A stretch of DNA of 64,000 nucleotides from sequence record PQ471516.1; one strand, given 5' to 3'. A program made the translations under genes and the position numbers. Below are positions 1 through 64,000 of this stretch, in pieces (positions within the stretch are counted from its first letter, which is position 1; each line of letters opens with the position of its first letter). The notes under the pieces were generated by a model, which was not told the origin of the DNA, did no database searches, and worked only from the letters and a program-made list of their open reading frames with translations.

Positions 1-282
1 CCATTCCTAAGCACTCTAAGTGAAGAAGAATTAGACGCTCTAAGCACCGAAGATCTTAAAACTGCAAAAGCAGCAGAGATCATCAAAGACCTAATCAACA
101 ATTCACTAAAAGGTGACGGTACTAATTCAATTGAGAATGAAGAAATCACTGTACAGAAAACTGTTCAACGTGTTAATAACGCATTGGATCGTACCAATGT
201 TGACTTCGTTGAACTACAGAACGTGTATCTAAACGTTCCTTCTGTTACTGATGCAAGTACTGTAGCTTACATCAAACTATAA
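1..282 (+). CDS. 5'-truncated hypothetical protein
   Basis: Frame 1 open from window start (PFLSTLSEEELDALS...) to TAA at 280-282. Confidence 0.7.
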   Translation, partial: PFLSTLSEEELDALSTEDLKTAKAAEIIKDLINNSLKGDGTNSIENEEITVQKTVQRVNNALDRTNVDFVELQNVYLNVPSVTDASTVAYIKL

Positions 283-305
283 TTTTTTTACATGGAGTTC
301 TTGAC

Positions 306-500
306 ATGACTGACAAAACCTTTTATGATCGTATTATTGAAGACAAGGGTGTGTTTGATAAAGTAATCTATGATTTAGAACTAATGATCAAAGATTCCCC
401 TAACCCACGAATGCGTACACAGGCTGAGTTTGCAAAAACTTACTTGGTTCAAGTTCAAGCAATTTGTGAAGCGATTAAAAAACATAACGATGGTGCTTGA
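306..500 (+). CDS. hypothetical protein
   Basis: 64-aa ORF with GGAG SD upstream. Confidence 0.7.
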   Translation: MTDKTFYDRIIEDKGVFDKVIYDLELMIKDSPNPRMRTQAEFAKTYLVQVQAICEAIKKHNDGA

Positions 501-525
501 CATTACCACCATCAAAATATATAAT
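497..525 (+). promoter_or_regulatory. sigma70 promoter
   Basis: TTGACA-17 nt-TATAAT. Confidence 0.8.
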
Positions 526-569
526 TATTACCGTAACGAACATTATAAAACATTGGAGCTTTTTATTAC

Positions 570-1070
570 ATGAAATCTATTATTGCCAACAACGACATTA
601 CTGCAAAAACTGTCCGTCTCGTTTCTGAGACTACTGATGTGGTAAGTATTACTGTAGCACGTAATATGGCTGATGATCGTGGCTTAGATTTGGTAGTTGT
701 TAAAGAGGGAGATATTCCTGTTGTTAAACTGGTAGACTTAAACAAGTATATCTATGAGCAGAAACAAGCAGAAAAGGCCGCTCTTAAGAAACAGCGTCTA
801 AATACTGTTGGTACTAAAGAAATTCAATTCAACTTCGGTACTCAAGAGCATGACCTAGCTATTAAAGCGAAGTCTGCTATGAAGTTCTTAGGTGAAGGTA
901 AGCAAGTTCACATTGTAATGAAAGCTGCTGGTCGTGGTAACACCCAAGCAGTTGTACAAAGTAATATTTCCGCACTGGAAGAATTCGTACAACGCTTAGG
1001 TAATGTTACCTATGTACAAAAAGTTGAGTTCCAGGGTAAAAAAGTAACCTGTACTGTCAAAGTAAAATAA
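570..1070 (+). CDS. infC: translation initiation factor IF-3
   Basis: N..I....VRLV, A+..A...[18 protein letters not shown]...A..FL..G..V motifs. Confidence 0.9.
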
Positions 1071-1083
1071 TAAGGACGATTCT

Positions 1084-1629
1084 ATGAAACATACTATCGA
1101 ACAACAAGTGTTTTCACTTCAGCAGTTCAGCGTAGTGAAAGCATCATATAAAAATTCTGTTTATTATGTAGCTGGTTTCAATGACATTACTGATTATGTT
1201 TTGAAGCTACAACCAGAACATTCTAAAGTAGATAACAAAGTACTTTCCAAAAGTCTCGCGTTGTTCTTAAGTGAGCATCCTGAGAAAAACAAGTTAGCGG
1301 TTCCGATGTTTGACTTCATTCTTCTGGATGATCCACAAACATCTGCTGAATATGTTGAGTGCGTATGTAGTGAAGTTTTCCATATGTCTCCTGATGAATG
1401 TTTAGATGTTATTCATGCACTAAACTCCAAATCAGCAGCATATCATGTTGGGACATTCACTGATGAAATGTGTATTACATTTTCTTCTATGATTGATCAT
1501 GGTAATGAGCAACTACGCCAGAATCTTAAGTATGATAAGATTCCAGCACAATCCGCTGACAAAGATTACGAATCTGCGTTAGATCTTCTGGAAATCTTGA
1601 TTCGCAACGATTACCCTGAAGATATCTAA
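1084..1629 (+). CDS. ClpS-like domain protein
   Basis: [24 protein letters not shown]...YHVGTFTDE resembles the ClpS core, judged by eye. Confidence 0.55.
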
Positions 1630-1642
1630 AAAATAATTTACT

Positions 1643-1697
1643 AAAAACTCCAAGATTAGATATATGATAAATATCTAAAACAAATCTTGGAGTTTTT
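1643..1697 (+). terminator. terminator hairpin enclosing a late-promoter-like TAAATA
   Basis: AAAAACTCCAAGATT (1643-1657) / AATCTTGGAGTTTTT (1683-1697); GATAAATA at 1666-1673 in the loop. Confidence 0.6.
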
Positions 1698-1702
1698 TTA
1701 TT

Positions 1703-2248
1703 ATGAATTATGAAGAATTATATAAAGCAATAATGGAAGCCATTGCTCCTACAGAAGTTGACTCTTCCCACTTGAAGACAATTGAGCACAATGGTAAAGA
1801 CTTGTATATTACCTTTAAAAATGGTAGTACTTATGAGTATGATGATGTACCAGAATCTATGGTAAGACACATGTTAACTGTTGATTCTAAGGGTCGTTTC
1901 TTGTGGCGTTATATCCGTGATAAATTCCCATACAGAAAAACAACATCTATTTCAACAAAGAAATACGATTCCAACCCAAATGCTATTAAACAGCGTTTAC
2001 GATACGATGTTGATACTGGTGAATGGGAAGACGCATTAACTCCTGATGTTATTAAGACGGTTGATATCCCAGTTGGATATGAATTCCGTGCTCCTAATAA
2101 CCAAGATTATGTATTCCAGGGTAAACAGTGGCGTAGTAAGCAAACAGGTAAGATTGCTCCAAAAGCAATTGGTTCTAAAATATCTGATATTGCAAAACGT
2201 TTAATAAAATTAAAAGGAAATGATCAGGAAGGAACCGATGAAATATAA
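1703..2248 (+). CDS. KTSC domain protein
   Basis: [20 protein letters not shown]...[14 protein letters not shown]. Confidence 0.8.
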
Positions 2249-62205: not shown

Positions 62206-62277
62206 TATTCTCAAAAATGTTAAATACTTCTGTACAAAGTAATGTTCAGAAGTATTTTTACTTTTATTGAGGGTATC

Positions 62278-62640
62278 ATGAAATATGTAATAATAATTAT
62301 AACTTTTTTAATTGGATTGATTTCTAGTTCAGCCAATGCAGTAGTTGGTGAAGAACTAGATTGTATGGGGAATGATGGGATATGGCATGTACTTACAAAT
62401 GACCCACAAAATGGAACTAATATTGTAGTTGACGGTGATGTTTATAGGTTCAGAAACGAAAGTACAATAGGTAACAAAAAAGTCTCGACATATAAAAATG
62501 ATGCTGATATAATAGCTAACGTAATCTTGATTGTAGATCCAAAGACAAGGGATGGAGATATCTATATTGTAATATATAGAGATTCTTCGAATAAACGCGA
62601 TGAGGATATAGATAAGCTTAATCTACATTGCGAATTTTAA
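62278..62640 (+). CDS. secreted protein
   Basis: Signal peptide ending ANA; ATG 62278 with GAGGG SD. Confidence 0.7.
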   Translation: MKYVIIIITFLIGLISSSANAVVGEELDCMGNDGIWHVLTNDPQNGTNIVVDGDVYRFRNESTIGNKKVSTYKNDADIIANVILIVDPKTRDGDIYIVIYRDSSNKRDEDIDKLNLHCEF

Positions 62641-62651
62641 ACGAGGTTCTT

Positions 62652-63020
62652 ATGTTAAACACGGTTCTTCAGTACATCTTAAGCATTCCATTTATTCTTA
62701 GCAGTCTTGTATCTGTAGCATCAATACTTTTTAGTATCTTTTCAGTAATGTACTGTGTATATACTAAAAAATATACATTCATCAATAAAGTAAACTCCTT
62801 ATTTGAAACTGATAGTGTACCGTATTGTGTGTGGTCTTTTAGTGCAGCGGGAATTTTTGCAACATTCCTTCTTTACAACCTGGATATTATTGACAGAAGA
62901 TATGTTCTAATTAGCATTGGGGTAGGATTATATTCATCGTGTTGGTACTTGATCTATGTTGTAGACTCGTGGTATACTACATATCAACAGTACACGATTA
63001 ATAAACAATATTCCAAGTGA
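62652..63020 (+). CDS. multi-TM membrane protein
   Basis: ATG 62652 with GAGG SD. Confidence 0.7.
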   Translation: MLNTVLQYILSIPFILSSLVSVASILFSIFSVMYCVYTKKYTFINKVNSLFETDSVPYCVWSFSAAGIFATFLLYNLDIIDRRYVLISIGVGLYSSCWYLIYVVDSWYTTYQQYTINKQYSK

Positions 63021-63024
63021 GGAT

Positions 63025-63384
63025 ATGACCATGAAAGTATTTTTATTCTTTATCTGTATGATTTTTTGTGCTGTACAAGCTCATGCAGAACCACTGGCAA
63101 AGATGTTTTGTTCAGAGGGTGAAGTGCAACACGTTTATCAAGGTGATTCGGATGACCACGATATCATTTACATTGATGGATCGATTTATAACTTTGTAAA
63201 AGAACATACAGTTGGCGATGTAAGTTTTACAGAGTACGCATCAAATGTAGATAAGAATGAGTTAGCGTTTATCCAGGTTAACTTAGAAGAAGATGCTGAT
63301 GAAGTACAAGATGTTAAATTGGTTCTAATGCGTAAAGGTGCAGGTACTACAGAGTTTGGTGGCTCCTGTGTTTTTGATGGATAG
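63025..63384 (+). CDS. secreted protein (probable paralog of 62278..62640)
   Basis: Signal peptide ending AHA; IDGSIYNF versus VDGDVYRF. Confidence 0.7.
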   Translation: MTMKVFLFFICMIFCAVQAHAEPLAKMFCSEGEVQHVYQGDSDDHDIIYIDGSIYNFVKEHTVGDVSFTEYASNVDKNELAFIQVNLEEDADEVQDVKLVLMRKGAGTTEFGGSCVFDG

Positions 63385-63398
63385 TCTGGAGATAAAAT

Positions 63399-63590
63399 AT
63401 GTTGATTTATCAAGGTGATGGTATTCGTGTATTGCAGCATCCATTCCTTCAAGTCTTTGATGTACAGAAGTTTCAAGAAGGTGATGATCCAAGAACATAT
63501 GGACGTAAACATGATTACTTCACTGTAAAGCAATGTACAAGTATTGAAGAAGTTCGTTCATTGGTGAAAGAACTAGAAAATAATGGTTGA
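63399..63590 (+). CDS. hypothetical protein
   Basis: GGAG SD. Confidence 0.75.
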   Translation: MLIYQGDGIRVLQHPFLQVFDVQKFQEGDDPRTYGRKHDYFTVKQCTSIEEVRSLVKELENNG

Positions 63591-63609
63591 CTTCGGTCAA
63601 CCTTTTTTT
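63585..63609 (+). terminator. rho-independent terminator
   Basis: GGTTGAC-TTCG-GTCAACC plus T7. Confidence 0.8.
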
Positions 63610-63646
63610 GTATACTTAATTCATATTAATTGATGAGGGTATTGTG

Positions 63647-64000
63647 ATGCTGGTATATCGTTTTGAATTAGGCTTCAGTTATGTAGAAGAAAACTTATAT
63701 CCAGTGAGATCAATTGGGCCGTTCGCCCGTTACTATTCACGATACAGTACTGACAACGGGTTTGATCGTTTGCGTTTAGGTACACCACATGACTTACAAC
63801 CTGAACCAGAAAAGGATGGAATCCATTGCATCAAGCACGGTTGGTCTTTTGGCTGTGCATCAATTAAAGACCTTATTCGTTTCTTCGCTAATGACTTAGG
63901 TCGTTTGCATCGTTCTGGCTTTCAGGTTTTTGTATATGAAGTTCCTGATAATCATGTTGATGTTGGTGGACACCAGGTTCAGTACTACATAGGTAGTGCT
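63647..64000 (+). CDS. 3'-truncated phage hypothetical protein
   Basis: MLVYRFELG...FGCASIKDL..FF...GFQVFVYEV open to the window end; GAGGG SD. Confidence 0.7.
   Translation, partial: MLVYRFELGFSYVEENLYPVRSIGPFARYYSRYSTDNGFDRLRLGTPHDLQPEPEKDGIHCIKHGWSFGCASIKDLIRFFANDLGRLHRSGFQVFVYEVPDNHVDVGGHQVQYYIGSA

Follow-up and report, generated by a model that had tools for sequence, protein, structure and literature searches.

AGTACT, a palindrome iterated about eightfold above chance in every reading frame of the Rak2-like jumbo phage Turkey5 and its relatives

The closest known phenomenon to the one described here, the iteration of the hexameric palindrome AGTACT in a 64,000-base stretch of the genome of Escherichia phage Turkey5, is the highly iterated palindrome HIP1 (GCGATCGC) of cyanobacteria. 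Each is a short, perfect palindrome that outnumbers every other word of its length, is found in every frame of coding DNA as well as outside genes, and persists beyond neutral expectation although individual sites turn over; neither has a settled function. HIP1, however, is an 8-mer of cellular genomes that nests cognate methyltransferase sites, whereas AGTACT is a 6-mer of a virus clade, has no evident cognate methyltransferase, and is stacked on early promoters. The DNA uptake sequence of Neisseria (DUS) and the uptake signal sequence of Haemophilus (USS) resemble AGTACT as genome-wide ‘self’ words that occur about once or more per kb, are far rarer in foreign DNA, are frame-independent, and occasionally form inverted pairs in terminators. 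Unlike AGTACT, they are non-palindromic words of 10-12 bases with a known uptake receptor, and the use of AGTACT in terminators is rare. The GATC sites of the Dam/SeqA system, such as those at oriC and the dnaA promoter, are also short genome-wide palindromes with local clusters over promoter elements, and these clusters provide temporal control through promoter overlap; in contrast to AGTACT, GATC is not enriched genome-wide in E. coli, and both its methyltransferase and its reader are known.

Among phages, SPO1 encodes a DNA-binding protein, TF1, that is abundant, favors sites overlapping the early promoters of the terminal-repeat host-takeover region, and damps early transcription. TF1 recognizes hydroxymethyluracil DNA at loosely defined sites, whereas AGTACT is a strict hexamer, and no HU-type gene was identified in Turkey5. 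The SlmA-binding sequence of E. coli (GTGAGTACTCAC) shares a central AGTACT and a palindromic layout with the phage word, but the phage flanks read tttC...Gaaa, G at -1 is disfavored (only 9-13%), and the word is not set in the 12-bp palindrome (GTG...CAC around AGTACT) that marks SlmA binding; only 13 sites come within two flank mismatches of that sequence, against 25 expected by chance, and AGTACT is equally enriched in a Xanthomonas phage. Polar guide words, such as Chi and the FtsK-orienting polar sequences (KOPS), are skewed in strand orientation, whereas AGTACT and its flanks are dyad-symmetric. The recognition site of ScaI and Eco255I is identical in sequence to AGTACT, and no such enzyme pair was found in the phage. 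The AGTACT system fits none of these families, and the tests for SlmA sites, Vsr-type drive, and polar words fail.

The stretch analyzed (hereafter, the window) is 100% identical to positions 248001-312000 of the Turkey5 genome (PQ471516.1), a 351-kb Rak2-like (Asteriusvirus-type) jumbo myovirus. The window has a G+C content of 35.6%, carries nearly all of its genes on the + strand, and encodes topoisomerase II, a clamp-loader, an exonuclease, a C5 DNA methyltransferase, a tRNA cluster, a sigma70-family factor, and many small unknowns. Full-text literature searches and papers on related phages yielded no published description of AGTACT enrichment and, to that extent, an iterated palindrome or genome-wide recognition word of this kind is new for viruses.

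A preliminary description of this DNA had proposed that AGTACT is enriched across the window, and the enrichment proved stronger than stated there. The window contains 160 copies, about one per 400 bp, where 21 are expected from mononucleotide composition; dinucleotide-preserving shuffles gave 20.3±4.8 copies with a maximum of 35, and 0 of 100 reached the observed count. AGTACT is the commonest hexamer in the window, above A/T-rich words despite the low G+C content. In a maximum-order Markov analysis of the window, GTAC, AGTAC/GTACT, and AGTACT each rank top for their own length, which indicates that the signal accumulates across the whole hexamer and on to CAGTACTG. AGTACT is also the commonest hexamer of the 351-kb genome, with 1001 copies against 120 expected (2.85 per kb) and every 10-kb bin enriched, so that the excess is about 8-fold over chance in both window and genome. 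In the one 50-kb stretch of the E. coli K-12 chromosome used for comparison, AGTACT occurs 3 times (0.06 per kb), making the phage about 45 times denser on this small sample; such a distribution, with at least about one copy per kb of own DNA and far fewer elsewhere, is that expected of a self-recognition word. The spacing between sites is near random (coefficient of variation 0.88), and local counts in the preliminary description were exact (8 in 55381-56820, 4 in 59401-59880, and 7 in 4699-6663). The copies and their main groupings are listed below in window coordinates, with the strand where one applies.

1-64000: 160 dispersed AGTACT copies, 143 in genes (in three phases) and 17 non-coding.
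4699-6663 (+): topoisomerase II large-subunit gene with 7 sites; anchor for orthologous loci in relatives.
55446-56802: cluster of 8 sites, in and before the sigma70-family factor gene (55905-56867).
59555-59823: cluster of 4 sites in small genes.

The word is not tied to a reading frame. Based on the 129 coding sequences of the record, 63 of the sites in the window are read as AGT-ACT, 28 as xAG-TAC-Txx, and 52 as xxA-GTA-CTx, and the density is 2.77 per kb in non-coding DNA and 2.47 per kb in coding DNA. Shuffling synonymous codons within genes, which leaves the proteins unchanged, gave 44.7±5.6 sites versus the 143 observed (z 17.5), with each codon phase 3.1-3.4-fold above the shuffles. 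Permuting codons gave 23.1±4.6 sites (z 26), which shows that peptides compatible with AGTACT are about 2-fold more frequent in the proteins than expected from codon content. The two outcomes that would have spoken against selection on the DNA, codon-preserving shuffles that reproduce the count or confinement to one frame, were therefore not observed. The word seems to have molded the product of a small gene at genome 23273-23641, outside the window: every Ser-Thr in its peptides DSTST and ESTDST is written as AGTACT, and five in-gene copies and two just upstream lie within 300 bp.

The sequence around AGTACT is symmetric as well. C is found at -1 and G at +1 in 43-49% of sites versus 18% in the background, and the T preference at positions -2 to -4 has its counterpart in A at +2 to +4, giving the consensus tttC-AGTACT-Gaaa. 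This dyad symmetry, which extends to ±4, persists on the coding strand when + strand genes alone are considered, as expected of a dimer reading double-stranded DNA. Beyond C/G at ±1, perfect palindromes reach no further than chance allows. The form suggested earlier as a possible high-affinity site, TTCAGTACTGAA, fits this pattern and has 15 copies in the genome; its counterpart TTCAGTTCTGAA is proposed as the comparison sequence in binding assays. CAGTA not followed by C is depleted, which shows that the full palindrome is the favored unit, and a one-strand, primase-type word was rejected on this basis. Pairing of CAGTACTG in the manner of LexA sites was rejected, as an 18-bp spacing was seen in 4 cases versus about 2.9 expected. 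The most extended palindromes in the window are as follows.

42835-42848: extended 14-bp palindrome TTACAGTACTGTAA, intragenic.
43084-43097: intergenic 14-bp palindrome ATTCAGTACTGAAT (4 copies in the genome), the motif in its fullest form.
43204-43219: intergenic 16-bp palindrome TATTCAGTACTGAATA, 121 bp from the palindrome at 43084-43097.

Loci of ~42 kb around the topoisomerase gene were compared from five relatives: Sharanji (E. coli), a Klebsiella phage, the Erwinia phages Hallingskeid and pEa_SNUABM_47, and Xanthomonas phage XaC1, whose topoisomerase proteins range from 94% down to 66% identity to that of Turkey5. In all five loci AGTACT is the commonest hexamer, as it is in the window and the genome, at 6.6-10.2 times expectation and 1.6-3.6 copies per kb; GTAC ranks first among 4-mers in four relatives and third in Sharanji, and the first 50 kb of XaC1 contain 312 copies of AGTACT. 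Together with its frame-independent and non-coding presence, this top rank is what HIP1 would lead one to look for. No enrichment was found in the Pseudomonas phage PA5oct, where the word is depleted (3 copies versus 14 expected), or in T4 (12 versus 9), and the rhizobiophages RHph_I34 and phiM9 have no GTAC excess once trinucleotide content is allowed for. A mechanism shared with the rhizobiophages was rejected, since their top palindrome CGTACG and the GTAC excess seen under a dinucleotide model vanish under trinucleotide and maximum-order models (0.85 and 1.02). The most enriched hexamers of the PA5oct locus are instead TGCAGA/TCTGCA and CTGCAT/ATGCAG, at 3.5-4 times expectation. The excess in phages of E. 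coli, Klebsiella, Erwinia, and Xanthomonas, and not in PA5oct, T4, or the rhizobiophages, identifies it as a trait of the Rak2-like clade, and its independence of host genus argues for a phage-encoded rather than a host reader.

Individual sites are conserved above background. In codon-level maps of the five relatives, AGTACT is kept 2-3 times more often than hexamers in general (43% versus 22% in Sharanji). In amino-acid-identical contexts, 61% of sites are kept versus 35% of phase-matched controls (p 0.003), and the excess is significant in all five relatives. In JNE01, which is 98% identical to Turkey5 (1.9% divergence), 111 of 113 sites are intact versus 90.2% for random hexamers (p 7e-4). 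Aligned DNA of Turkey5 and Sharanji has 21 sites in common, of 49 and 42 respectively; about half of the sites are shared at 76% identity, and distant relatives share 7-12 of ~40 sites with Turkey5, while density is held at 1.6-3.6 per kb. Site protection that is weak but clear, combined with turnover and constant density, is the behavior of a distributed genome-wide signal. The positive selection at the DNA level put forward in the preliminary description is supported by the protein-preserving shuffles, by conservation above background, by clade-wide sharing, and by the dyad-symmetric flanks.

Phages are textbook palindrome avoiders, yet here one palindrome is the commonest hexamer, clade-wide and over four host genera. 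The premise that phages avoid palindromes nevertheless holds to an extreme in Turkey5. GCGC has 0 copies in 351 kb versus 238 expected, and none in any of the relatives’ loci. Twenty-five palindromic hexamers have 0 copies in the genome and two more have a single copy; these 27 comprise every one of the eight made up of G and C only, and 19 of the 24 that contain four G/C. Even GGTACC (0 versus 38 expected) and CGTACG (0 versus 26) are missing despite the enriched GTAC core, and in the window GATC reaches 0.38 of its expected count and GGWCC 0.14.

AGTACT density is at its maximum in the early region, which extends from 340 kb of the genome to 20 kb and contains ~100 small genes, each with its own sigma70-type promoter. 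Here there are 12.4 sites per kb in non-coding DNA and 3.7 per kb in coding DNA, the early intergenic DNA being 5 times denser in AGTACT than DNA elsewhere. The equivalent of this region in related phages is a ~21-kb direct terminal repeat (PMC13070987). Of the 18 RpoD-like promoters predicted in phage CBB, 11 are grouped in a single region and another three fall on its terminal repeat (PMC5259590). Site placement on the early promoters is stereotyped. AGTACT abuts the -35 box as AAAAGTACTTGCAA, with TTGACAGTACT as a further form, or abuts the -10 box as AGTACTG(N)TATAAT, in which the flanking G often supplies the TG of an extended -10; the promoter layout is AAAAGTACTTGCAA...AGTACTGTATAAT, and a free-standing form, TTCAGTACTGAATCA, also occurs in the region. 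Among 94 promoter-like sites, the starts of AGTACT accumulate at -5 (21 sites), +15/+16 (15 sites), and +5 (3 sites) from the first base of the -35 box. A fixed distance to the promoter boxes is thus a property of a subset (39 of 94), and sites are not confined to upstream regions as a sigma70 promoter element would be, since 143 of the 160 in the window are intragenic. XaC1, at 66% topoisomerase protein identity, has the same promoter design (AAAAGTAC[T/C]TTGCAA...GTACTTTATAAT). Nearly every early promoter in genome 1-20200 is followed by a G+C-rich hairpin in the 5’-untranslated region (GGGGAA...TTCCCC), which lacks a T run, and then by a Shine-Dalgarno sequence; as these hairpins have no T run, many early genes have no terminators between them.

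In the window, the same promoter design drives two tRNA-Ser genes and is also found at 34433. The preliminary description had placed AGTACT just before the -10 box of four promoters, at coordinates (34419, 39661, 40772, and 44425) that are those of the -35 boxes. Three of the four stand, with sites at 34433, 39676, and 40787 directly before the -10 as AGTACTGATA(T/A)AAT and the flanking G supplying the TG of the extended -10; the site at 44439 has another geometry. Occurrence in terminator loops, which had also been noted, is anecdotal: only 1 of 34 terminator-like hairpins in the window overlaps AGTACT (at 35753), and a terminator-loop role was rejected. The supplement to the CBB paper lists, without comment, one terminator made of two AGTACT arms, AGTACTGG...CCAGTACT (PMC5259590). 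The promoter and hairpin sites of the window are the following.

34433-34438: site abutting a -10 box, TGGACA-N-AGTACTGATATAAT.
39676-39681: spacer site in TTGACT(39661)-N17-TAAAAT, directly before a TG-extended -10, upstream of tRNA-Ser 39696-39785.
40787-40792: spacer site in TTGACT(40772)-N17-TATAAT, directly before a TG-extended -10, upstream of tRNA-Ser 40807-40896.
35744-35761 (+): terminator-like hairpin cccagtCTTAGTactggg followed by a T run, with a site at 35753; the sole hairpin of the window that overlaps a site.

The pattern implies that these phages have a strong and conserved sequence-specific transaction on DNA that has not been described before. From the enrichment, frame independence, symmetry, conservation, clade distribution, and promoter registers, we infer that a protein binds AGTACT, that it is phage-encoded, and that it represses. 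The explanation that we tentatively favor is that AGTACT, in its fullest form ttCAGTACTGaa, may be the double-stranded recognition word of a factor encoded by the clade, likely a homodimeric sequence-specific DNA-binding protein. In this scheme, ~1000 individually weak sites would be kept along the genome by selection on density, and with phage DNA ~45 times richer in the word than the host sample, AGTACT could work as a ‘self’ tag. At sites stacked in fixed registers on -35 and -10 boxes, occupancy would compete with host RNA polymerase and probably shut early transcription off; discrete registers that overlap both boxes fit occlusion of the polymerase better than activation. The ~900 sites inside genes hint at a further role along the whole genome, for instance in marking or coating of phage DNA. 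A bolder extension of this scheme is possible, though we consider it doubtful: Rak2-like jumbo phages might use a clade-specific, genome-wide ‘self’ word, the viral equivalent of DUS, Chi, or HIP1, by which one phage protein both tells phage from host DNA and switches off the ~100 early promoters of the terminal repeat, the genome having co-evolved with that protein down to its own amino-acid sequences and nearly all G+C-rich palindromes having been purged.

Should the word indeed mark ‘self’ DNA, a jumbo phage with unmodified DNA and without a nucleus would have a new means of keeping its own DNA apart from that of the host. Very little is known of gene regulation in this group of jumbo phages, which are used in therapy, and AGTACT offers a bait with which to fish out a reader, a testable model of early-promoter shut-off, and a simple genomic signature for recognizing the clade in metagenomes.

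Several observations weigh against a dedicated binding protein. Annotation, domain, and motif scans tied no reader protein to AGTACT, and the candidate readers that can be named are circumstantial. Few early proteins are conserved between Turkey5 and XaC1; they include a 60-residue CxxC...HxxC protein (73% identity, genome 14010-14192), a 90-residue protein (52%, genome 17138-17410), and a protein with a ParE-like toxin domain (genome 15164-15418), and the first two are putative readers based on their conservation. No helical periodicity was seen in inter-site distances in the window. A bare, contiguous 6-bp palindrome is more typical of restriction and modification enzymes than of transcription factors, the fixed registers may stem in part from duplication of promoter cassettes rather than from function, a repressor role alone leaves the ~900 intragenic sites unexplained, and the host contrast rests on a single 50-kb sample. 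The annotated ‘transcriptional regulator’ at genome 15472-15690 and the ‘FleQ’ protein were rejected as readers, as no domain matches support them. Site clusters gave no clue to an autoregulated reader gene and named no candidate, the densest being repeated Ser-Thr coding or ordinary early promoters.

The strongest competing explanation, which we regard as unlikely, is that AGTACT is the target of a phage DNA methyltransferase, with the mark either being protective or being read in a SeqA-like manner to tell parental from new DNA at early promoters. Type II modification enzymes typically recognize a contiguous 6-bp palindrome and draw little information from its flanks, and the retention of 1001 ScaI-type sites amid the complete purge of GCGC and 25 hexamer palindromes suggests protection; many early promoters also carry two sites ~20-22 bp apart. 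A possible enzyme is encoded beside the early region, since the single amino-methyltransferase found by motif scan is a 175-residue Dam-family protein (PF05869; genome 55185-55712, outside the window) whose gene lies just past that region, at the position where an adenine methyltransferase is annotated in XaC1. Known members of PF05869 such as T1 Dam, however, act on GATC. The only other predicted methyltransferase, and so the only other candidate for a cognate enzyme of the kind whose sites are nested in HIP1, is the C5 enzyme of the window (28796-29656, +), a protein of 286 residues that resembles the DNMT3 catalytic domain (E 3e-22). AGTACT is not supported as its target: in RaK2, methylated CpG was reported from bisulfite sequencing, as data not shown (PMC3622015), and AGTACT contains no CpG, which leaves the methylation option so far without a cognate enzyme. 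Protection would moreover account for tolerance of the word and not for its 8-fold excess, and the literature covered yielded no methylome or ScaI digest of any clade member.

It is improbable that AGTACT is instead the action site of a dimeric phage enzyme, such as the gyrase-like type II topoisomerase of the phage, cutting with a 4-bp stagger (A|GTAC|T), or an endonuclease that nicks or cleaves, whose site density would aid decatenation, recombination-dependent replication, or recombination of the terminal repeats. The dyad-symmetric core with weak symmetric flanks would suit such an enzyme, the density is highest in the terminal-repeat region, which must recombine, and the phage encodes topoisomerase II and several PD-(D/E)XK or TnsA-like nucleases. 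Type II topoisomerases, however, have weak, degenerate preferences and no strict hexamer, and the rhizobiophages, which have a related topoisomerase, lack the GTAC excess after trinucleotide correction. Cuts at 1000 places in its own genome would endanger the phage, and the fixed -35/-10 registers are left unexplained.

We give somewhat less credence still to the idea that the excess is a neutral by-product of biased repair or conversion, through Vsr-type activity or a context-dependent mutation bias, and that the sites have no function. Drive of this type, which has been considered in connection with the HIP1 palindrome and with CCWGG in E. coli, would raise the count of a word in every frame and outside genes alike, and would mimic conservation. 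No single-substitution neighbor of AGTACT is depleted, though, with AGTATT/AATACT at 1.15-1.43 times expectation, and the gene product annotated as an ‘endonuclease’ is Pyr_excise, a glycosylase of the T4 endonuclease V type, and not Vsr; on these grounds Vsr-type drive was rejected, in a proteome search that was not exhaustive. A neutral process also sits poorly with the 5-fold denser early intergenic DNA, the fixed promoter registers, and the approximately 2-fold enrichment of the proteins themselves in AGTACT-compatible peptides.

Action of AGUACU in RNA, for example in directing processing or decay as the RegB sites of T4 do, is very improbable. A palindrome would be present in the transcript whichever strand codes, enrichment is strongest in early transcripts, and read-through between early genes that have no intervening terminators may transcribe the promoter-embedded copies. 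An RNA signal, however, provides no reason for a perfect palindrome with mirrored flanks on the coding strand or for fixed registers against the promoter hexamers. Finally, although Ser-Thr, Val-Leu, and x-Tyr-x peptides can encode AGTACT and Ser-Thr is repeated in the gene at genome 23273-23641, an artefact of codon usage, dipeptide content, or repeats deserves practically no weight and is ruled out by the synonymous and codon-permutation shuffles (z 17.5 and 26), the enrichment of all phases, the equal non-coding density, the dispersal of sites with differing flanks, and the same excess in independent genomes.

Several features of these genomes were noted in passing. The C5 methyltransferase gene of JNE01 (locus 28815-30704) encodes 629 residues because of an intein (Hint plus LAGLIDADG endonuclease) near residue 77, and the Turkey5 gene is the intein-free allele. 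A stand-alone TnsA-like protein with a restriction-endonuclease fold (142 residues, genome 128905-129333) is encoded among tail genes, and its best PHROG match is annotated as ‘head closure’. The sigma70-family factor of the window (55905-56867, +) has detectable regions 2 and 3 and no region 4 match; a separate gp55-like late sigma factor is encoded outside the window at genome 187400-188239. In the tRNA cluster, the record annotates a 119-nt ‘tRNA-Leu’ at 38028-38146; ARAGORN instead predicts tRNA-Leu(taa) at 38480-38564, and it also finds a tRNA-Gly(tcc) at 39530-39605 that the record does not annotate.

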